Below are positions 1,437-14,531 of a stretch of DNA of 64,000 bases, in pieces. Under the pieces are notes generated by a model that saw nothing but the letters and a program-made list of their open reading frames with translations, searched no databases and had not been told where the DNA came from. The position numbers and the translations under genes are program-made. The stretch lies in the sequence record NC_061447.1; one strand, given 5' to 3'. Numbering within the stretch: the stretch's first letter is position 1; each line of letters starts with the position of its first letter.

Positions 1437-2462
1437 TCATTCCTTCAATACACCACCAATCTCCGCAAACATATTTTTGTAAACCAATGAGCCATCCAGC
1501 TTGTCCAATCGTTCAGCCTGAACATAAAGTCTAGGTGATGTGCGCATGTTAGCCCACGTCTTCTCATTACGGTCGAGTCCACCAAGCATCGGGATAATGA
1601 CCATACTGAGATTCCTATTTGCTCTGACGAAACCTATGTCAATATGCTTCCTGTTTATGCTTATGAACAGTCTATTGATTGCGTCCAAACCAACAGGCCG
1701 ATTGAATTCCGTGTCACTAACAGTATTGACCAAGCTAATGAGAAACCCTTTCTCCTTACTTTCGATATCAAACAAGTTCTCTTTTAAATCGCCAACAGTT
1801 GACGCAGAGTAATACGATACGTCATGACCATAATCTTTGAGGCAAGCACCTAACGCACGAGCAGATTCGATGTGCGCAACGTTATCATCTCTCAGGATAT
1901 AGACAGGAGCATCGGACTGATAGGTCTTCTGCGCAACCATGTTGATAAGATCGCAAGAGGGCTTGCCTACAGTGGCCAAGCCCTTATTGGCGATAAAGAA
2001 TTTGTCACGATAAACATCATACACGTTTGGAGGCATGTACTTCATGTAGTCATCATCCAGACTAAGTATCACGCGAGGCTTAGTTAACTGAATGACAAGC
2101 TGCATACTGCGAAGCGATGCCTTGTACTCCGTGTCGGATAGTACGCGACTAATAGGCAGATATTGCACGACAACGAATCGGTCATCAATTGAATCGACAA
2201 CCGAACGTATCAGCGTACTGCCTAACGTTGGCCCAGCAGAGAATTGGGTAACGATCATTAGGCCATCTTCAACTAAGCCTTTCGACTCAGCAAGCGTCAT
2301 GCCGTTACCTGTCTGCTTTACCGCGCGCTCCCACGTTATTGAAGGTTCGTCTCGGCTTTCGGCGTGTACAGAAGCTGTGCAACACCAGAGACAGGCTCCA
2401 AGAATGTAAGCAGCAATACGTTGTCTGGATCGGCTTCGGCTGGAGTAACAGTTTCCGGCCAT
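1437..2462 (-). CDS. Periplasmic-binding-protein-like (ABC substrate-binding-type sensor domain) protein; start either 2462 or 2300
   Basis: VVQYLPISRVLSDTEYKASLR...KPRVILSLDDD and PVYILRDD...GFLISL resemble the two lobes of ABC-substrate-binding-like extracytoplasmic sensor domains (by eye). ATG 2300 has a CAGGT RBS. The longer start adds a signal-peptide-like segment. Confidence 0.6.
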   Translation of the reverse strand: MAGNCYSSRSRSRQRIAAYILGACLWCCTASVHAESRDEPSITWERAVKQTGNGMTLAESKGLVEDGLMIVTQFSAGPTLGSTLIRSVVDSIDDRFVVVQYLPISRVLSDTEYKASLRSMQLVIQLTKPRVILSLDDDYMKYMPPNVYDVYRDKFFIANKGLATVGKPSCDLINMVAQKTYQSDAPVYILRDDNVAHIESARALGACLKDYGHDVSYYSASTVGDLKENLFDIESKEKGFLISLVNTVSDTEFNRPVGLDAINRLFISINRKHIDIGFVRANRNLSMVIIPMLGGLDRNEKTWANMRTSPRLYVQAERLDKLDGSLVYKNMFAEIGGVLKE

Positions 2463-3160
2463 AGAACTTCTCCTCTCTCGTCAGTGACGTAAGGAATGCC
2501 GTTGCCTTTGCCCAATCCATGTCGCAAAGCCCAAACGGTGTCGGCATTCTCCTGCACGAACACTAACCCTTTTGTTTCTGGCTCACTCGAACCTTCTTCA
2601 AGTGCTGTCACACGCGCTGTAAGAAGCTGTGCATCAGACTGAATGGTACGAATGGCGCTAAGGTTAGAGTTAACGCGCTGGTTCATGTTGTTGAACATGG
2701 TGAAGAACGAGTTGTTCATCGCCGTGCGAACGCCGTCCGTATAGGACTTAGGAATCAGTTCGTCGTTATCGAAGGTTGTTACACCTGTGCGCACAAGAAC
2801 TTTACCGGTAAGACGTCCACCACTTGCGCTGATAATCTGAGGAGCAGGCAAATCAGCCTCGTCCCAGACTTGAACAGTGGTCATCACCGTATTGTAGTCG
2901 GTCTCTTCCTGCCACGTATTCCTATAAGGAGCCGTAGCAGTTTTGGACTTACGACGCATCACTTTTTTATAGTTAGCGTTCGTACCGTCCGCGATAATCC
3001 AGAGACCGTTCAGTGGGAAAACGCGAGTGTAAGGTTCGGCGAATGCTAAGATGATTGTTACATCAGCACTTACCTTATACACAATATCGTTCGACGCTGA
3101 CAGACCTTGCTGTTGTGCAAGACTAATCAACGTGTCCACGTAGTTAGTCAACTGGCTCAT
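2336..3160 (-). CDS. Virion structural protein with central coiled-coil and C-terminal small beta domain
   Basis: C-terminal WALRHGLG..PYVTDERG..LWPETV...DNVLLLTFLEPVSGVA matches the W-x-I-x-HNLG...F..P.SG.A module common in phage tail and fibre proteins. Confidence 0.7.
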   Translation of the reverse strand: MSQLTNYVDTLISLAQQQGLSASNDIVYKVSADVTIILAFAEPYTRVFPLNGLWIIADGTNANYKKVMRRKSKTATAPYRNTWQEETDYNTVMTTVQVWDEADLPAPQIISASGGRLTGKVLVRTGVTTFDNDELIPKSYTDGVRTAMNNSFFTMFNNMNQRVNSNLSAIRTIQSDAQLLTARVTALEEGSSEPETKGLVFVQENADTVWALRHGLGKGNGIPYVTDERGEVLWPETVTPAEADPDNVLLLTFLEPVSGVAQLLYTPKAETNLQ

Positions 3161-4667: not shown

Positions 4668-7547
4668 TTAACCATCAATCTCGTCAGGCTCCCAGCACAG
4701 AATAGGACGGCGCCATACTTGGAACACACCGATAGGGTTAGCGCGTCCGTCGTCAATGAAGCAATCCATTGTGCGTCCTCCTGAGTTTCCGCTTTGCATC
4801 AACGTCACAAGTCCTTCTGTCCAGGAAGCACGGCCACCAGAGTCAGCCTCAAACAATCCTTCCCACACCATATCGAAAGCGCCTTTCCACGCATTGAAGT
4901 GGTGAGAAGAATAAGCACCATCACCGACAGAGCACAGCACCATGTACTGGTAATCTTTCACACACGGGATGTTGTAGTTATTCCCGCGAGGAACCGATGT
5001 GCCGTTGTTGTTGAAGATACATTCCCAACCAGTACGGTCAGCAGCGCCAGTAGTTAAGAACAGAGGACGACGAATGATCATCATAATCCCGTTCTCACCG
5101 CCATTGTTGCTAGACTTCTCGCAGTACGCATTGCAGCGCAGCGAACGGTCTACTGTGAACGTGGTTGAGTTCGAGAAGTCACGGCAGTAGTAGTTCGATC
5201 CCCACTTAGGCAAATACTCTGCTGGTGGTACGAAGAAGTGACGCTCTGCAAGTTCAATCTCGCCGTAGCGGTCATACGCAAACACGATGTACTCATAGCC
5301 GGCCTCAATCTGGATGTTGTGGCCTTGAGTACCGACGCCATTCCATTTCCAGACAACCTGCCAGTCGTTCGAATCGCGTGAGGCTTCTTCTGTAATGAGC
5401 TGATACTTACGCTCATAGATGTGCCACACTTTCCCTTCTTCCGTTGTTTGGATATACAACGAGTTCGGGTCATTAATGTTCCCGTTCTCAGTACCGCAGT
5501 AAATCTTATGCGATGCACCAGCAGAGTTGTAGATAGTGCCTGACCCGATTGAACCAAACATATCCCAGTTCATCATCAGGTGAGAGGTACACATTTCGTT
5601 CTGGCCGCTACCGTCCGACGTTGTAATCAGATACTCACATAGGTCCTTGAACGGATATTTAACGTAGCGGTTGTTGGCGCGGTTAACAACGTGAACCCAA
5701 TCGTGAGACTGAATCTTAGGCACAGGGAAGCATGGGTTAGTCACAGACACAACGAAGGTCTTTGACTCATACATAGGCAGCTTCTTGAAACGGTTATCCC
5801 TAATCGTAACGTTGTGCTGCATCCCCATTGTCGAGGCACCGTCCTGAGAGCCAAGCACTTTGTAGTAGCGCAGGTGACTACTCTTGGTGTTCTCAAACAA
5901 ACCGTTGAGCGCCATGCTCATGTTGCCTTCGCGGTCTGTACCTGTAACGTAAGGGAAACCATTCGTGTCGAAGTCATAGCCGACAGAGAAGTAGCTGTCA
6001 GTATCAGACGACTTGGCGCCACGATACATTTCATTCCACGCGTTACCTTCACCAATACCAGGCTCACCAAACAGAGAGTATGCAGCGCGATACACATACT
6101 GCGAACCTGCGTACACACGACGCGATGCACCAATGCGGTACATGGCTTGAGGTAGCCCACCCTGCAAACGGTTAACGTCGGCCGTATCGTAAGACACAAC
6201 GTAGACGTAATGGTCAGAGCCAATTGAGTTCAAGAAAGCCGCACAGGCAGCAGCGTTCGCAACACCTGGGTTAGTACCTTCGGCAGATGCGTGAATGTCA
6301 AATGTACGACGCTCAACCAACGCGCGGTCTGACTTACGAATCTTATAGACGTTCCAGCCACGAGTGTCGGTGTAGCGAGTACCGTTAAAGATTGTGTAGC
6401 CTGTATCGCCTGTGTCGAGATAACGCTGGTAGCCTACGACGTGAGAGAAGATTAGGCTACGTGCTGCAAGTGACTGCGCGTTTTCGTTTGACCAAGAGAC
6501 TGTAACATCACCTGCTGCCATACGCGCTGCCCAATCATCGGGCTTCTGCGGATATGTAGTAACATCGAAGTCTACCTGATACGCAGAGCCTGGTTCGACG
6601 CAGCACTTGTCACGATAGATAAGAGGTGGGTCAATGACAACATCGTCAGAGATATCAACTTGTCCGCAGTAGAACTGGCGCCATGTACCTGGTTGACCAC
6701 CAATAGTGCCTGGGCCTGCTTGCGTAGCTCCTGTGAACTGATACGCAGCAGATAGCTCGAAGTTGATTTGGTTATGCAACTGAGCGACGTTGGTCCAAGA
6801 TACATGATTGCCGAACGCGTTAATGCTCTTGTTCTTTGCTGCAACGGTAGAAGCAACATACGCCTGACCGTTACTGCGAATGCCGAGTGGGTTAAAGATC
6901 GCGTTGAAGTTTACGTTGCCTTCATACGGACCTTTCTGCAACACAATCAGGCTGACGCCGTTTCGGTGGGCCTCACTCAGAGCACTAAGCATTTGGGCAG
7001 GCATACTCTGGTTGGGCGCAGACAGCAGAAGCATCACGCAACTGAACTGCTTGAAATACTTGTACGTACCGTCATAACCATACGCACCAGCGTTAATCTC
7101 TTGCCAGCTATGAGCAAGCATGTCGAGAGGGATGCGCTGCATATACGCAACGAGTTGTCCCCACGACTCCATTGCAGTGTCATCATTGACAGGTGCAAGG
7201 TCTGATATGACAAGCATGGTGCTGCCATATGTGATGTTCGAGTTGTAGCCGCGTTGTGTCAACAGGTGACGCAGCACACCCATGTTGTTAATGCTCTTAT
7301 TGCGGTAGTTACCGAGCCAACCGTAGTTAGCATCAACAAGAGGACTACCGTCGCGGATGAATCGACCATTCATGTAAACAGAGCCGAAGCCGCATACGTA
7401 TGAAAGAGCATGACCATCAACAACAAAAGAGGTGAAGCGTGAGCTATCAACTGCCATAGCGTCTACTGCGGTAATAGAGCCATCGCCAGGACTACCGCTA
7501 AATACAGGCGTAATGCCTCGCGCATACAAGCAGCTTTGTTGCAGCAT
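4668..7547 (-). CDS. Large adhesin-like virion protein containing an ILEI/PANDER (GG-type lectin) domain
   Basis: RGWNVYKI...RRTFDI...AFLNSI...VYVVSYD...MYRIGA...YRAAYSLFG..G matches the ILEI/PANDER pattern. 959 aa in the fibre cluster. Confidence 0.7.
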   Translation of the reverse strand: MLQQSCLYARGITPVFSGSPGDGSITAVDAMAVDSSRFTSFVVDGHALSYVCGFGSVYMNGRFIRDGSPLVDANYGWLGNYRNKSINNMGVLRHLLTQRGYNSNITYGSTMLVISDLAPVNDDTAMESWGQLVAYMQRIPLDMLAHSWQEINAGAYGYDGTYKYFKQFSCVMLLLSAPNQSMPAQMLSALSEAHRNGVSLIVLQKGPYEGNVNFNAIFNPLGIRSNGQAYVASTVAAKNKSINAFGNHVSWTNVAQLHNQINFELSAAYQFTGATQAGPGTIGGQPGTWRQFYCGQVDISDDVVIDPPLIYRDKCCVEPGSAYQVDFDVTTYPQKPDDWAARMAAGDVTVSWSNENAQSLAARSLIFSHVVGYQRYLDTGDTGYTIFNGTRYTDTRGWNVYKIRKSDRALVERRTFDIHASAEGTNPGVANAAACAAFLNSIGSDHYVYVVSYDTADVNRLQGGLPQAMYRIGASRRVYAGSQYVYRAAYSLFGEPGIGEGNAWNEMYRGAKSSDTDSYFSVGYDFDTNGFPYVTGTDREGNMSMALNGLFENTKSSHLRYYKVLGSQDGASTMGMQHNVTIRDNRFKKLPMYESKTFVVSVTNPCFPVPKIQSHDWVHVVNRANNRYVKYPFKDLCEYLITTSDGSGQNEMCTSHLMMNWDMFGSIGSGTIYNSAGASHKIYCGTENGNINDPNSLYIQTTEEGKVWHIYERKYQLITEEASRDSNDWQVVWKWNGVGTQGHNIQIEAGYEYIVFAYDRYGEIELAERHFFVPPAEYLPKWGSNYYCRDFSNSTTFTVDRSLRCNAYCEKSSNNGGENGIMMIIRRPLFLTTGAADRTGWECIFNNNGTSVPRGNNYNIPCVKDYQYMVLCSVGDGAYSSHHFNAWKGAFDMVWEGLFEADSGGRASWTEGLVTLMQSGNSGGRTMDCFIDDGRANPIGVFQVWRRPILCWEPDEIDG

Positions 7548-7588: not shown

Positions 7589-9613
7589 TTATCCAAATAC
7601 TACGCTGGTGATAGCGAGATAATCGAGGTCGTTCGAGTCACCACGGTCACCGCCACCTTGAACACGCAACCAAATTTCTTGGCCAACAGGTATGTTCACA
7701 TCGAACGTGAAATACTGATACGTTCCGCTGTTGTTTGCAGGATTCTTAGCAGCGCCTTCACCAGCAGTGCGCTCGTAGATCTCAATTGTGTGCCAGCCAC
7801 CATTCTTACCGTCGTACACCCATGCGAAAGTGATTTGCTTAATTGGCTTAGTGAAGAAGTTACCCCACTTGAACCAACCATTCACGCCACCCCAGATGTT
7901 CATGTAGTTACCGTCGCGTGTCCACACTTGAGAAGCATTAGGAGAACCTGTACCGCGTCCACCTGTCTGTTCCCATGCGTTTGGTTGCCACGGCAGAACG
8001 TCTGAATCTGGCGGCTGATCGTTACCACCTTCGATTGTTACGCAACGATAAGGAACGGTGAAGTCACTCACGTTAATCTTAGGAGGCTGAATCGGACAGT
8101 ACACGAAGTATGACCAATCACATCCGATAGGCGCTGTCGCTCGGACAGTGATGTTAGAGCGCAGCACATGCTCAGGGTACTTCCAAAATTCGAGTGTGCC
8201 AGTCTTGCCCGCAGCAACGATAGAGGTATCGAGCACGTTCATGTCTTGGTCAAACACTTCGAACTTGGTGTCGAACGAGTTCGCAACACAGACAACAAGC
8301 TCTGCACGAATGTCCGATTGAGTTCCTAACGCAAAATTATCTTCTGTGGTTGGATGACCGGCAGAGTACACGCTGTAGCTCTGGCAAGGGTGCATGTATT
8401 CACGCGCACCACGTTCACCTGGACAGTACAGACTATAGAAGCAACTCGCAAGCGAGGCAGCGTTACCAAAGTCCTTACTGACTACGCGCACCATGATATC
8501 ACATGCAACACCTTGAGGGTCAAAGTAGAAATACAGATAACCCTCACCAGTACGAGCGTCAAGCGTCGTAGCGATACGGCGACCAGACTGATAGACCTCA
8601 ATGAAGTCGAATGTTTCCCACGAGGTGTAGTCGAGATACATCCAGCCTGCTGTCCAGCCGATGAAGTGATAGTATTCGAAAGCGTTAGCATTCTGAATAC
8701 GTTCAGCGATAGGCCAAACAGTTGCGTGACACGGCGCAGGGAAGATTGGGCTACCGATGTAGTCTGGATGAATGACGTCAGGGAAATTGATAACGTCATA
8801 CGATGCCTGACTATCGAGAGCTAATCCGCCACGGTCAGAAGGTGCGGCAAGGCGCGGAGGATATACTTCTAAGCTCCAGCCATAACCCTGCGTTGTACGC
8901 ACACGCACCATGATACGCATATCAGCAGCGTCAGGGTCGAACTGGAATTTGATGCGCGAGCGACCGGCCAGCTTACCACACGTCGATGCAACACGCACAC
9001 CCATGTGGTACACGTCAACACTAGCACCAGCTGGTGCATAGGACGCGATCATCAGCTCCACGTACCCTTCGATTGCTGGCATTGCATAATACGTCTCGGT
9101 GATAACAGCACCACGCCCATGAACAGAAGCGTAAGGTACGTTAGGGTTAGCATAAGTGCCTAGCCCTGCGCGAGAAGCAACACCAGTAGGGTCGTATGAT
9201 TCGATGGTCTTGATGCCGGGTCTATTGATAGATCGACCAGTAGGAGGAGAGAAAGAGTTAATAAGACCGAAGCCAGTGCGACCAGCATCAGGTAAATCAA
9301 ACCCTGCAGGATAGCCTTTGAGGATATCGTATTTCTCACGGCCACCACTCCCTATTCCGTTACCAGAACCTTTGGTAGTTGACGTTGGACCGCCACCACA
9401 TGCGCCCGTCTCAAGGTTTGAACACGGGTCATCATACGTAGGGTCGAAAGAGTCGTTAATTGGTAACCAACTCTTTCCCCACTGATTACGCACACTGAAT
9501 TTGTCTGGGCTTAATGGCGTCCAGTCTCCTGCATGTGTGCGTATGAACATGGGCGTGTCCACGCAGTCAAGCCAACCGTTATTCGCAGCATTACGAACGC
9601 GAAAACGTGACAT
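7589..9613 (-). CDS. Virion structural protein with three tandem beta-sandwich repeats
   Basis: 674 aa. Three roughly 100-aa units with ...I.VRV...Y(P/C)P endings, located in the fibre cluster. Confidence 0.7.
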   Translation of the reverse strand: MSRFRVRNAANNGWLDCVDTPMFIRTHAGDWTPLSPDKFSVRNQWGKSWLPINDSFDPTYDDPCSNLETGACGGGPTSTTKGSGNGIGSGGREKYDILKGYPAGFDLPDAGRTGFGLINSFSPPTGRSINRPGIKTIESYDPTGVASRAGLGTYANPNVPYASVHGRGAVITETYYAMPAIEGYVELMIASYAPAGASVDVYHMGVRVASTCGKLAGRSRIKFQFDPDAADMRIMVRVRTTQGYGWSLEVYPPRLAAPSDRGGLALDSQASYDVINFPDVIHPDYIGSPIFPAPCHATVWPIAERIQNANAFEYYHFIGWTAGWMYLDYTSWETFDFIEVYQSGRRIATTLDARTGEGYLYFYFDPQGVACDIMVRVVSKDFGNAASLASCFYSLYCPGERGAREYMHPCQSYSVYSAGHPTTEDNFALGTQSDIRAELVVCVANSFDTKFEVFDQDMNVLDTSIVAAGKTGTLEFWKYPEHVLRSNITVRATAPIGCDWSYFVYCPIQPPKINVSDFTVPYRCVTIEGGNDQPPDSDVLPWQPNAWEQTGGRGTGSPNASQVWTRDGNYMNIWGGVNGWFKWGNFFTKPIKQITFAWVYDGKNGGWHTIEIYERTAGEGAAKNPANNSGTYQYFTFDVNIPVGQEIWLRVQGGGDRGDSNDLDYLAITSVVFG

Positions 9614-9622
9614 GCTCTCTCC

Positions 9623-10114
9623 TTACGGCCTTACCCAGATGGCGCCCGGTGCAATCTCATTATCAATGGCTGGGTCGGTGTCTTGTACGAAGACCATTAC
9701 AGTACCAGGATTACCCGGTGCACCAGTAGGTCCAGTAGGGCCTGTAGGACCAGCAGGACCGCGATTACCTACATAGCCTTGCTTACCTTGTTGACCATCA
9801 GAGCCACGAGGACCAGGACAGCCATCAGTACCGCGACGACCATCGCTACCCATGAGACCATCAATACCATCACGGCCAGCAGGACCAACGCCACCAGCAG
9901 GACCGTAGCCGATGCTGTGTATTGTAGGCAGACCAGAAATCTGGAGCTTGCCGATATTAGGGATGTTAATCGCCAGTAGACCTGTAACTGCATCGAATGA
10001 GCCGCTGAGTTGGCTATCATCCTGAACAGTATCAACTGTGATTCCCCCTTCGGTCGCTACGACAGGACCAGAAGCATTGGCCTTAACGAGCGATATATCA
10101 ACTTTTTCTACCAC
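9623..10114 (-). CDS. Collagen-like protein (163 aa)
   Basis: GTG start with AGGAGG RBS, Gly-X-Y run, C-terminal VFVQDTDP...GAIWVRP motif. Confidence 0.85.
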   Translation of the reverse strand: MVEKVDISLVKANASGPVVATEGGITVDTVQDDSQLSGSFDAVTGLLAINIPNIGKLQISGLPTIHSIGYGPAGGVGPAGRDGIDGLMGSDGRRGTDGCPGPRGSDGQQGKQGYVGNRGPAGPTGPTGPTGAPGNPGTVMVFVQDTDPAIDNEIAPGAIWVRP

Positions 10115-10123
10115 GTTGCCTCC

Positions 10124-10756
10124 TTATGGCCATGTGATATTCTGATCTTTGGTAGGGTCCACCCAGATTGTGCCAGCAGCAACGTTCCCTGGGTTAGTAG
10201 CACTGACGATGATAGACAGGCGTCCAGCAGGACCTGCAGGGCCGGTAGGACCAGTCGGTCCAGTAGAACCAGTAGCGCCTGTAGGACCAGTACCGCCACG
10301 AGGGCCAGTAGGACCAGTAGGACCCATAGGGCCTGTTCTACCATCTGGGCCAGTAGGACCAACAGGGCCTGGTAATCCGTCACGGCCATCTGGTCCTGGG
10401 ATACCCTGCTCACCATCTGGACCCACAGGACCAGTACACCCAGGCTCACCTGGATTACCATCGCGGCCATCTCGTCCGTCTTTACCATCAGCACCTGTCT
10501 CACCTCTACCGCCCTGACGACCTTCAGGTATATCAGCAGCAGTAGGGAAGCCGCCTACCTTAACTGTCTGCCCGTTAGCAAACTTGAGAGTAAGAATACC
10601 CGAAGTTGCATCGAACGACGAATCGGAAGTTACCTCTGAGGGAACCTGTTCGTCGCTAGGGTCTATCGAGAGAACCCCAGACTGAGCACGAATCGCAGTA
10701 GGCGTAGACGAAGAACCAGCCTGAATGAGACCGGTCTTAACTTTAATCAGACTCAT
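10124..10756 (-). CDS. Collagen-like protein (210 aa)
   Basis: Long Gly-X-Y run rich in GPT, C-terminal IIVSATNP...GTIWVDP motif, TAATG coupling to the upstream gene. Confidence 0.85.
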
Positions 10757-12195
10757 TACTTTTTCTCCGCTTTCGCAACAATATCCGTGTTGTGTGCGAG
10801 CACATCACCAACGAAATAACAATCAAATGGGTCAACGTCGATATCAACAGTCTTCACTTGATTATCTACGCGGCGGAACTCATACACTGACACAGGACCC
10901 TTACGACCAAGCACGGTATTCCCTGGCTGCACATCACGCGCAGGAATATAACGCCACACGCTATCGTCATATACAAGCACTGGATGTTCGTGTGTGAACT
11001 TCTGTCCGTTGATAACGAAGTAGTGATCTTCTTCGCCGTACTTCAAACCGACAACAGTAGCATTCACCAGATTACCTTTGAGACTTGGCGAAGACCACTG
11101 ACGGAAGTTCTTAGGCTGATTAGAGAAACTCAGCAGGCTATCACCTACACGTAAGTCCTCGGCAGCTTTAGGTCCTGTAATTGTTTCGACAACAGAACCA
11201 AACACAATACAGCCAGACGTTGAGCTTGTTGGGTTACGTGCAACAACTGTTAGCGCAGAACTCACAGTAACAGTAGGACGTGACGCTTGGCCCAGGTCAG
11301 TAACTACGCAACGGATTGTGCCTTTGATTGTACGATCAGCACCAAGTCCGAGACGCAGATAGAAGTTAACAATACACGTTGAGGTATCAGTAGCGCCAAG
11401 CGTTACGCCCTCAGTAGTTGTGATAGACCATTGATACTTATATGGACCTACACCACCACGCGCATTGACAGGAAGGTATGCAAGCGAAGTAAATACATCA
11501 GAGCCTTGCACTGCACGTTGACCTACCATGTACAGGTTAGACACTGACGCAGCAAGAGGCGTTATAGTAGGCAGAGGAGGTGCTGGCGTAACGTTTGCTG
11601 TAGGGTACAACCAAACGAACACACGACCATCTGTAGGCTGCGTGTTAGACTGAACAGCAGTTGTAATAGGCGCTGGACCAGTAGGCCCTGTAGCACCCGA
11701 GATGCAGCTTGCTCCAGTAGCGCCACGAGGACCGATGTTGCCAGTAGGACCAGGAGGACCGTCTGGGCCCGTAGGACCGTCTGGACCTTGACGCCCAGTA
11801 TCACCAGGAGGACCGTCTTCACCATCACGTCCTGGGTCACCAACAGGACCAGTCTTACCTTTAGAGCCAGGACCACCTTCGCAGCCCTGTCTGCCTGTTT
11901 CACCATCTCGACCATCACGTCCGTCACGGCCAGGAGCACCTGGAGCGCCTCGACGCCCAGGTTTCCCTTCACCGAACATAGCAATAGTAGGAAGTCCGGG
12001 GACGTTCACTACTTCCCCGTTCTTCTTGATGAACACCAACACGCCTGTCTTGCTGTTAAACCTTACGCTTGCGATCTGAGTATTCGTCGCTAAGTCCGTA
12101 GACTCAAACTCGACGCTACCATCAACACCGACCAGCGATTTACCTTCATCGTTAGCCGTTGTTTCGATTTGCGAAAGTTTTAACTGTGTTGTCAT
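10756..12195 (-). CDS. Collagen-like fibre protein with Ig-like domain and C-terminal Hint (intein-like) domain
   Basis: Gly-X-Y run, then [10 protein letters not shown] Ig-like domain. Hint blocks: G/CIVFGSVV (A), FTHEHP (B), VDIDVD (F), LAHN/T (G); Hint spans 10789..11211. Confidence 0.85.
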
Positions 12196-14531
12196 TTCGG
12201 TTCAACCTTAATGCACAAGTTACCTGACAGCTTCGAACCGTAGCTTGTAATCTGCGCGTTAACGATACGCACCTTAGCAACGATATCAATGAAGCCTTGA
12301 GGTTGGTTTTCTATCAGCACCGTGAACATCTGCGTCAGGCTAACGTTTGAATACGCAATCACTTCTGTCAGACTCGCATCAGAAGTAACAACGTTAAAGC
12401 CAGCACTGCCTGTGCCTTTAAGGCCACGCCCATATTCAGCTTCGGATGTACCAGGCACCTTGAACGACAGAACATATTCGAGATGCTCTTTACCGCTGGT
12501 GGCAGCAAAGCCAGGACCGAGTTGACACTGGAAGTCGGCGACACACGTAAGCATGATGCCTTTCTTGAACTCGATGCGCTGCTGAATAACCAGCTCTTCC
12601 GAATCGTCCGCATTCTGCTGAATGTTGTACATGTTGCGTGGGTCAGCTTCTTCGGCGAGAGCCTGAGTATTACGAATTGTAATCTCTGGCCACTTGCCTG
12701 TAATCTGAATGCCCTCACCCTGAATGATTTCAGGTGCAGCGATAGGCACGTCGATAGGAGGCAGACCTTGACGTTTGAACATGTAGCCAGTCGGCGTAGG
12801 GATAGCATCAATGATAACGCCATCGACCGAACTGTCTTTCGAGCCTACTGCCATAACGTTCTCAAAGATTGTGATCTCAATGAGTGTGTCGGCAGGAATA
12901 GGCGACAACGTTTTCAGCACATTGCCCGCTACTGTGAAGTCCTGCGTGTGTACTGTCAGGCCACTCATGGCCATAACGCAGTGCGACTTGTTCAGCGGAG
13001 TAGTTGGCAGAACAAATGTATCAGCATCATAAGGCAGGCGATACTGAGCAACACGAATACGAGTAGACCAGTTGGCGCGTTCTTCATAGCGAGCTACATA
13101 GAATGTGTACTTCTGACCTGACGGGATTGCTTCGGTTAACGTTACGCTGTTACCATTCGTGAGTTTATACACGGTGGTAGGCTGCCACGTTGAACCAACG
13201 ACACAGAACACCATGTCAACGCTATCAATCGGTTTGTTGCCGAGTTTAAACAGCGCAGTCTGTCCGTCACCCACACCTTCGTATGTCTCAAACAGAACAA
13301 CGTGACCTTGAGAAGGCTCAACGCGGAACTGACGCATATCGAGTTGCATACGTTGTTCAGGATAAGACGAAAGCAGAAGCTGGTCATCAACAACACTGTA
13401 TGCAGTACGCGGCTGGAGAACACCTGACGTGCCAAGCAACAGGTCAGTTGAGCTATCGAGAATCTCAGATAGCGTGTAGCGCAGCTTATCAGGCGTTGCT
13501 GTAGTCACAACAGAACTGAATAACAGTTTGCCTGGAGGAACAAACAGCGTACCAGTTGTCTGACGAGTACCACCAGCAACAGGTCCCCAATACGGCTGCA
13601 AGTCTTTGCCTCTGTACAATGCCCACGCTTCTGGTACATCGTTATTCAGCGGCCACGGAATGCCAGCAGACGGAGTTGTTGGGTTAGTGATGCGTCGCCA
13701 CACGGCAATAGTTGTCTGTGCGCTAACGAATGGAATCGCGCTGTCCATGTTGACCAGTTGACCATTCGTGTATTTGAAGTGACGACACGCACCAGCGCCT
13801 GTACCAGAGATTGTCTGAATCAGAACAACCTCGTTAGCCTTCAACACTGAGGACAGCGAAGCAATCTTGAACGTGTTTGCGTTGATGAATCCTGCGGCAG
13901 TAATCTGTCCGCTGAACACACGGTCATGCTCACTGAAAGCCCAATAGTATGAGCCTTGTCCATAGCGATATGCAGTACCTGGAGAGCGTGTGCCGTCAGA
14001 GTTAACGTGCATATCAAGAACCGATACGGCATTGAACACGTTATCGCTCAAGCTCGGTAAGTTCTGGAGCGTTGCTACACTCGGTATGGATGTGTAGTCA
14101 GCCATTTTCACAGCAAGAATCTTTTGGATGTCCTGCTGAATATGTACGAGAAGGCTAACGCGGTTGATAGAGTTCGGTACGGCGATGATAGGCTCTTGCA
14201 GAACAACGTGACCAAAAGGTCGGTTGTCAGAAAGCATGATCAACAGCTCACCAACTCGTTTCAGTGCTTCACCTGCAACGTAGTTGACTTTAATATCAAA
14301 GATAAAGCGGGCACTGTTCTCGGTAAGAACCTGAACATATGACAATGCGCCCGACGCAAGCTCGCTGCCAAGTAACTGCTCTGGAACCACAGACGGGTTA
14401 GAGCCAACAAAGTCACCTGCTTTAAACGACACTGGTTGAATAGCAAGTCCACCAGCGTTAGCGTTCGCAACGGCCTGTTCTCCCTGAGGCGTTAGACGCA
14501 ATGCGTCAACGTAGATAGATTCAGTGGCCAT
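12192..14531 (-). CDS. Proximal tail fibre / tail-collar fibre protein
   Basis: N-terminus [16 protein letters not shown]...FKAGD resembles the P2 gpH / tail-collar fibre N-terminal domain. Three internal GDG.T..F.L...P-type repeats. AAGGAG RBS before ATG 14531. Confidence 0.7.

Follow-up and report, generated by a model that had tools for sequence, protein, structure and literature searches.

A putative self-removing Hint cassette at the C-terminus of a collagen-like tail fibre of Erwinia phage pEa_SNUABM_33

The window analysed here, a stretch of 64,000 nucleotides from record NC_061447.1, belongs to Erwinia phage pEa_SNUABM_33, a 263-kb jumbo myovirus of the genus Alexandravirus (window bases 9600-12200 are 100% identical to this genome, and a window position is the record position minus 62000). 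Within the tail module, the gene gp111 (YP_010301893.1; 10756..12195, minus strand) encodes a protein of 479 amino acids (aa), annotated as "virion structural protein", in which a collagen-like fibre is followed by a C-terminal Hint (Hedgehog/intein) domain. By its fold, motifs, size and context this domain is, as far as sequence can tell, a type-A bacterial intein-like (BIL) domain. In the reading that we hold to be probable, with reservations, it would act as a self-removing maturation cassette at the distal end of the fibre, and its thioester would be resolved by the short peptide that follows the domain, by hydrolysis or by a thiol.

The Hint domain of gp111 and its conservation

The Hint domain covers aa 329-469 (141 aa; 10789..11211, minus strand, as for all features of the window given below) and was recognized with Pfam, phmmer, AlphaFold2 and Foldseek. 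It opens with Cys329 (11209..11211), the predicted thioester nucleophile at Hint position 1, whose codon is directly preceded by that of Gly328 (11212-11214). Block B provides the T-x-x-H motif Thr401-His404 (10984..10995) and block F the aspartates D451 and D453, and the domain ends with the C-terminal cleavage pair His468-Asn469 (10789..10794; Asn469 codon, 10789-10791). A tail of 10 aa, or mini C-extein, follows (aa 470-479; 10759..10788); it starts with Thr470 at position +1, contains Lys475, Lys478 and Lys479, and is closed by the stop codon at 10756-10758. An earlier note, made from the letters of the window, had described this domain and its tail, and the open reading frame (ORF) and codon positions confirm its coordinates, its lengths and each of the residues that it named. 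Its description of an autoprocessing module holding the full residue set for N-terminal thioester formation and Asn cyclisation also stands, as does the lack of a homing endonuclease, since a domain of 141 aa has the size of a mini-intein and no insert.

In sequence comparisons, the best phmmer match among PDB sequences was a bacterial intein-like domain, 2lwy_A (E 1.8e-6), aligned from end to end. The best Pfam family was PT-HINT (PF07591; E 9.8e-6), with 26.3 bits against a cut-off of 27.7; a precomputed table does list PF07591 for gp111. The AlphaFold2 model, built with 23 homologues, reached a predicted local distance difference test score (pLDDT) of 80-93 over aa 329-470. Searched against the PDB with Foldseek, it matched 2lwy first (E 1.2e-8, template modelling (TM) score 0.82, root-mean-square deviation 2.2 Å), then Tetrahymena BIL2 (6y75, TM 0.76) and then mini-inteins; all 16 matches with E <= 0.001 were BILs or inteins. 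Model confidence and fold matches together give gp111 the beta-fold of the Hint superfamily, and the resemblance to BIL and intein domains is not due to chance. When a hidden Markov model (HMM) made from Hint matches was run against the six-frame translation of the window, no second Hint domain was found.

The 23 aligned homologues (476-481 aa, down to 44% identity) all share the architecture of gp111. Seven residues of the processing site are invariant among them, namely G328, C329, T401, H402, D451, H468 and N469, while H404 is nearly so (at least 90% of the homologues), and a His-Asn pair is aligned in 176 of 196 related domains. The residue at +1 behaves differently from this set. It is Thr in 20 of the 23 homologues and Ser, Ala or Leu in the other three; elsewhere it is Val in Yersinia phage fHe-Yen9-02, Met in the orthologue of Alcaligenes phage Afa-NA1 and Ala in that of phage NCTB. 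The +1 Thr to which the earlier note had drawn attention is therefore not conserved, and canonical Thr-mediated splicing cannot be the conserved chemistry. As for selection, the ratio of non-synonymous to synonymous substitution rates (dN/dS) computed from nine phage genomes was 0.14 for the Hint domain versus 0.15-0.19 for the N-terminal, collagen and Ig parts; the Hint domain is under purifying selection. Every one of the 55 phage records matched by the Hint query retains it, as do orthologues down to about 30% identity. Since one stop codon would suffice to remove a domain from the C-terminus, such long retention argues for a benefit.

A natural counterpart without the domain was nevertheless found in the Dickeya JA phages, which the Hint query had missed and which were reached by tblastn with the Ig-like region. 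JA11 gp096 (324 aa) is 49% identical to gp111 over aa 1-322 and lies in the same gene order, without a Hint domain. It stops one residue past the invariant Asn321-Pro322, where gp111 continues with a variable linker of 6 aa (aa 323-328; 11212..11229) and Cys1; this linker closes with the invariant Gly328 at position -1 and is a Gly run in distant relatives. Only ten bases separate the stop codon of JA11 gp096 from the next gene. In a midpoint-rooted tree of the N-exteins, JA11 was placed between the Erwinia/Yersinia clade and the Hint-bearing orthologues of Afa-NA1 and NCTB, and since it nests among Hint-bearing orthologues, a single loss is the simplest history. Besides, JA11 ends at about the predicted cleaved end of gp111, so that the predicted mature end is a viable fibre end. 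A search for further Hint-less orthologues with the Ig-like query in a word index of 5.8 billion proteins reached only close, Hint-bearing relatives. Retention among homologues, on which the earlier note had let its reading depend, thus holds for the catalytic residues of all 23 homologues but not for JA11, whose missing domain comes close to contradicting indispensability.

Terminal cassettes on phage tail proteins

The distribution of the domain was obtained from a full HMMER scan of 1.84 billion representative sequences with Hint plus tail as query (E <= 0.001), which returned 397 proteins; fold matches in BFVD add many further proteins from uncultured tailed phages that are labelled "Hint domain containing". 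Traits were counted on the best 150 of the 397 proteins, about two thirds of which carry the domain as a terminal cassette, with 100 terminal domains lying outside the gp111 family. These 100 domains close their proteins, with 1-15 residues past His-Asn. Their N-terminal flank is rich in glycine (on average 3.6 Gly among the eight residues before Cys1, in runs of up to nine), and their +1 residue is mostly Ala, Lys, Ser, Val or Asn, hence mostly non-nucleophilic. The parts preceding the cassette are mutually unrelated and include collagen, fn3, Calx-beta, Phage_tail_fib, PASTA, Ig (Ig_J) and J-like domains. The broader family is conserved at little beyond the catalytic positions, and PF07591 was matched by 25 of 46 cassette proteins.

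The most consistent feature of the tails is lysine. At least one Lys is present in 96 of the 100 tails, versus 26.5 +/- 4.3 expected from length-matched C-termini of 81 long control ORFs of these phages (maximum 41 in 2000 draws). Lysine makes up 14% of tail residues, compared with 3.6% elsewhere; it is penultimate in about 40 tails and last in 18, and two tails consist of a single Lys. When eight diverse cassettes were aligned, only seven columns proved invariant, and one of these is the penultimate Lys. One of the eight, P0028, has its downstream neighbour on the other strand, so that its Lys tail is not the effect of a ribosome-binding site. Where the domain occurs internally or in tandem, Lys and a Gly run connect the copies, and 28 of 53 internal copies have Lys at +1. 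Six metagenomic proteins (P0038, P0044, P0054, P0099, P0132 and P0152) carry two to three back-to-back BIL domains linked only in this way.

In gp111 itself, Lys478 aligns with the penultimate Lys of the distant cassettes. The GGAG Shine-Dalgarno site of the next gene (10765..10768) lies inside the tail codons, 8-9 bases before the next ATG, and the nine bases encoding Ala-Glu-Lys are identical in nine genomes, GGAG included, whereas neighbouring codons vary synonymously. In the close family, conservation of Ala-Glu-Lys is therefore at least partly that of a ribosome-binding site and cannot be taken as evidence at the protein level. For the same reason, the idea that the conserved tail is a docking peptide was set aside. 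The lysine signal is rescued because the distant cassettes share it, and it rests on the comparison with these only.

Gene context places the cassettes on tail structures. In an uncultured 56-kb phage contig, the cassette protein closes a baseplate and fibre module; its gene adjoins a fibre gene ending in Peptidase_S74, as judged from a weak match (the two genes together, L017:6541-9089). In a second context, the cassette is borne by a J-like tip protein of 1192 aa encoded after an NlpC/P60 gene. Phage NCTB has three Hint ORFs in its tail module, one of them a Calx-beta protein of 1304 aa. Another, BN7874_135 (L005:5698-6159, minus strand), is a stand-alone Hint ORF of 153 aa directly after a Hint-bearing fibre gene; it has almost no N-extein, ends with His-Asn and three residues, and its BFVD model superimposes on the gp111 Hint domain with a TM score of 0.83. 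Alcaligenes phage Afa-NA1 (78 kb) and Salmonella phage Sen-NF (108 kb) gave Hint-query matches identical in identity, E-value and local coordinates. Although their listed hosts and sizes differ, both have a jumbo-phage-like tail module, and these records may be incomplete or mixed assemblies.

Proposed processing and its alternatives

According to the proposed mechanism, Cys329 would attack the carbonyl of Gly328 through an N-S acyl shift, yielding a thioester, and Asn469, aided by His468, would cyclise and cut the bond to the tail. The thioester could then be resolved by an amine of the mini-tail itself, either the alpha-amine set free by the cut or, in the manner of Tetrahymena BIL2, the epsilon-amine on a Lys of the tail. 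Water or a cytoplasmic thiol may serve instead and, in pEa_SNUABM_33, the side chain of Thr470 may additionally act as attacker, i.e., the canonical route. The product would be a fibre ending at Gly328, with or without a short Lys peptide, and a free Hint domain of 15.8 kDa would leave. The computed masses are 50.1 kDa for the precursor, 33.2 kDa for the cleaved form and 34.3 kDa for the tail-joined form. This scheme is in line with the type-A BIL domains, which are reported to splice or cleave via a thioester and Asn cyclisation. They need no +1 nucleophile to link their flanks, the thioester being attacked by the amine that is set free on the C-flank, and cleavage products dominate (PMC4031507). 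In BIL2, a Lys epsilon-amine resolves the thioester to give an isopeptide (PMC8616854). Since nearly all tails carry Lys, even where they shrink to a single residue, the usual acceptor may be an amine that belongs to the tail itself. Splicing of the Lys-rich tail onto the fibre tip, as the earlier note had it, is hence compatible with the relatives as far as tail joining goes, but not as a conserved Thr-mediated reaction.

We infer cleavage itself, the resolving nucleophile and the biological role from sequence and comparison. The position of the domain, its predicted self-removal and its occurrence beside an S74-ended fibre suggest, by analogy, a transient maturation or assembly domain of the fibre C-terminus, which is the role that we prefer. 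Three observations argue that the phage would benefit from it: an easily lost domain is retained through deep divergence, its dN/dS is low, and it has repeatedly been recruited to the ends of fibres. Several observations weigh on the other side. The JA11 fibre exists without a Hint domain, so that a chaperone role is not obligatory, and this orthologue shows that the benefit is not absolute. Purifying selection on the catalytic residues is equally expected for a passenger that merely needs to remove itself. The tail is modelled with low confidence (pLDDT 41), and in the close family the codon of Lys478 is confounded with the ribosome-binding site. Moreover, to our knowledge Hint domains do not trimerise, which leaves an assembly role as an analogy.

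JA11 also keeps alive the first alternative, which we hold to be doubtful. Here, the domain would be an intein-like hitch-hiker of no benefit to the phage that recombines among the 3' ends of tail genes, its residues being kept since an unremoved lump of 16 kDa is harmful. The clean absence of the domain from JA11, in the same gene order and with a fibre presumed functional, agrees with this, as do the fusion of the cassette to many unrelated N-terminal parts, its own context-independent flanks (Gly run and Lys tail) and the three copies in phage NCTB. However, one nonsense mutation would remove such a passenger, which is at odds with its presence in all 55 matching records and in orthologues to about 30% identity at a dN/dS of 0.14. 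No homing endonuclease lies in or beside the domain, nor does the window hold another Hint. The divergences of the Hint domain and the N-extein are parallel, indicating vertical inheritance.

A second group of alternatives gives the thioester a partner. As an enzyme-free and ATP-free ligase in virion construction, the cassette might pass the Gly thioester to a Lys epsilon-amine, either that of the conserved penultimate Lys in a tail (forming a branched isopeptide cap) or one on a neighbouring chain or another tail protein; we regard this as unlikely. If true, ubiquitin-like conjugation, so far demonstrated for Tetrahymena BIL2 alone, would be widespread on phage tail fibres. A strictly trans-acting version, though chemically possible, seems quite unlikely. 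In it, the Gly328 thioester would be transferred to another virion protein, at a Lys or at the N-terminal amine, or else to a nucleophile on the host surface, and the fibre would become fixed covalently, much as BIL2 attaches a ubiquitin-like domain independently of ATP. This version can draw on BIL2 as second-best structural match, on the invariant Gly at -1 and on the transfer by BIL2 of its N-extein to Lys of several substrates (PMC8616854). It could also be related to the unexplained "hairs" on the tails of these phages: the relatives AD1, Y3 and the JA phages are described as "hairy Myoviridae" (PMC6143709). Yet the JA phages are among those described as hairy while lacking the Hint domain (PMC6143709). 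An acceptor Lys is built into 96 of 100 tails, beside the active site, and resolution in cis is therefore favoured. The His-Asn pair is unneeded for transfer in trans and yet nearly universal, and no partner protein is evident. Nothing found here supports the option, put forward in the earlier note, that the fibre is ligated to a protein of the virion or to the surface of the host; BIL2 of Tetrahymena is a precedent only.

It is very unlikely that the Hint domain stays on the fibre as a structural or receptor-binding knob whose catalytic residues are kept for stability only. The C-terminal domains of fibres are usually receptor-binding, and the Hint model is compact and confident. Against this, the complete catalytic set is invariant while the broader family is little conserved elsewhere, the opposite of what is expected of a binding surface; unrelated phages, whose hosts are likewise unrelated, carry this cassette on their fibres, and JA11 does without it. 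Hardly credible, finally, is a -1 slip on two Lys codons that would join gp111 to the downstream gene gp110 and turn the Hint domain into an internal intein flanked by two collagen fibres. The gene does close with AAA AAG before its stop codon (within 10756-10770), GGAG precedes this pair closely, and gp110 starts in the -1 frame and overlaps the stop codon. However, the AAA AAG pair is absent from SNUABM_5, SNUABM_7, SNUABM_3 and fHe-Yen9-02, and in Y3 and Yoloswag the codons at this point are different and the gene that follows lies in frame 0, behind TAA. This frameshift was rejected as unconserved in the relatives, and the arrangement is probably fortuitous.

Related systems and gene neighbourhood

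Type-A BIL domains, reportedly described by Amitai et al. in 2003 and Dassa et al. in 2004, are the closest known relatives, the one from Clostridium thermocellum (PDB 2lwy) being the best match of the gp111 Hint domain in both sequence and fold. In common with them, the domain is mini-sized, has Cys1, T..H and a C-terminal His-Asn, lacks an endonuclease and sits in a variable surface protein, and the +1 nucleophile seems dispensable across the cassette family. Unlike them, the cassette is terminal, with only 1-15 residues after it that nearly always include Lys, and is found on phage tail proteins; the gp111 copy has Thr at +1 and is known here from sequence and model. Tetrahymena thermophila BIL2, from the BUBL polyubiquitin-like locus (PDB 6y75, 6tmm), shares with gp111 an N-extein ending in Gly and a Lys in the C-flank, whereas it is eukaryotic and only 17% identical. 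Its flanks are ubiquitin-like domains, those of gp111 an Ig-like domain on a collagen stalk and a decapeptide.

Class 1 mini-inteins (gp41-1 and RadA among the fold matches) have the same fold and catalytic residues, and the +1 Thr would make canonical splicing chemically possible in gp111. In contrast to these inteins, the gp111 Hint domain does not occupy a conserved site of a host enzyme and has no endonuclease or remnant of one; the Hint-less allele, JA11 gp096, ends at the insertion point without a C-extein; and a +1 Cys, Ser or Thr is not conserved, orthologues having Ala, Leu, Val or Met. The pretoxin-HINT domain of polymorphic toxins (PF07591), which gave the best Pfam family at a score just below its curated cut-off, releases the part downstream of it, whereas only 10 residues and neither a toxin nor any other domain come after the Hint domain of gp111. 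The autoprocessing domain of Hedgehog resembles it in the Hint fold and in a Cys thioester, predicted here, at a Gly-Cys junction. However, the Hedgehog domain has a sterol-recognition region and no His-Asn, while gp111 has His-Asn and only a short tail after the Hint core.

With regard to the proposed role, the nearest parallel is found in the Peptidase_S74 intramolecular chaperones of K1F endosialidase and the T5 L-shaped fibre, which aid maturation and then cleave themselves by a Ser-Lys dyad. The Hint cassette likewise stands at the C-terminal end of a trimeric fibre, and the same logic is proposed for it, but its fold and its chemistry (Cys thioester and Asn cyclisation) are unrelated, and no Pfam or fold match of gp111 to S74 was obtained. 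Among self-cleaving C-terminal domains for fibre maturation, we know of only the Peptidase_S74 chaperone type as having been described. If the Hint cassette does an S74-like job, it would represent a second, chemically unrelated solution for fibre maturation.

Public annotation already flags the domain, with Y3_110 being said to "contain[s] intein domain" and the NCTB genes being called "intein domain protein". In the library of papers searched, none was found that deals with a Hint or BIL domain closing a phage tail fibre; the literature matches concern terminase or replication inteins, and the proteomics paper on PaBG covers no Hint-bearing fibre. What appears to be new is the terminal cassette as a recurrent architecture of phage tails, with its Gly linker and Lys tail, and the existence of a natural Hint-less orthologue. 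The cassette is widespread, from collagen fibres of jumbo phages to baseplate fibres and J-like tips. Should self-removal be true, many receptor-binding proteins would be annotated with lengths that exceed their mature form by about 16 kDa. Transfer of the thioester to another protein, if it occurs, would amount to a novel means of assembling covalent structures in the virion. The family also offers a natural setting for asking why type-A BILs keep His-Asn and a flanking Lys, as well as a compact, context-independent self-removing tag made of a Gly linker, a core of 140 aa and Lys.

Upstream of the Hint domain, gp111 is composed, in this order, of an N-terminal domain, collagen and an Ig-like domain, and the whole protein matches phrog_38766 over its full length (E 6.7e-256). 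The N-terminal domain (aa 1-75; 11971..12195) is beta-rich, is common to two downstream collagen-like paralogues and is probably the end that attaches to the virion. The collagen G-X-Y repeats (aa 76-175; 11671..11970; Pfam Collagen, 1e-13) include an invariant Cys105. The predicted Ig-like beta-sandwich (aa 176-322; 11230..11670) was modelled by AlphaFold2 with a pLDDT of 77-93 over about aa 210-320, and its C-terminal Asn321-Pro322 corresponds to the end point of the JA11 orthologue.

In the tail module, gp111 is preceded by genes for a large tail protein and a 780-aa protein, and followed by two collagen-like fibre genes (210 and 163 aa) and by genes for proteins of 674 and 959 aa. Inside the tail-fibre cluster, about 7.6 kb from the Hint domain, lies gp103 (2336-3160), a free-standing HNH endonuclease gene. 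In Yoloswag, an HNH endonuclease gene comes directly after its short fibre genes. No connection between gp103 and the Hint domain was found. The 959-aa protein (4668-7547) contains an ILEI-like domain (PF15711, 25.2 bits, just below the cut-off) and has conserved counterparts in JA11 and Sen-NF, which bear the annotation "ILEI domain-containing".

The gene directly downstream of gp111, gp110 (210 aa; 10124..10756), encodes one of the two collagen-like fibre paralogues, and its ATG overlaps the gp111 stop codon. Altogether, three tandem collagen-like paralogues of 163, 210 and 479 aa, with a common N-terminal domain of about 75 aa, occupy 9623-12195, and the same order is found in JA11, NCTB and Afa-NA1. 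One invariant Cys is located in the same G-X-Y triplet in all three proteins. The trio and this cysteine might reflect a heterotrimeric fibre or an interchain disulfide ring.

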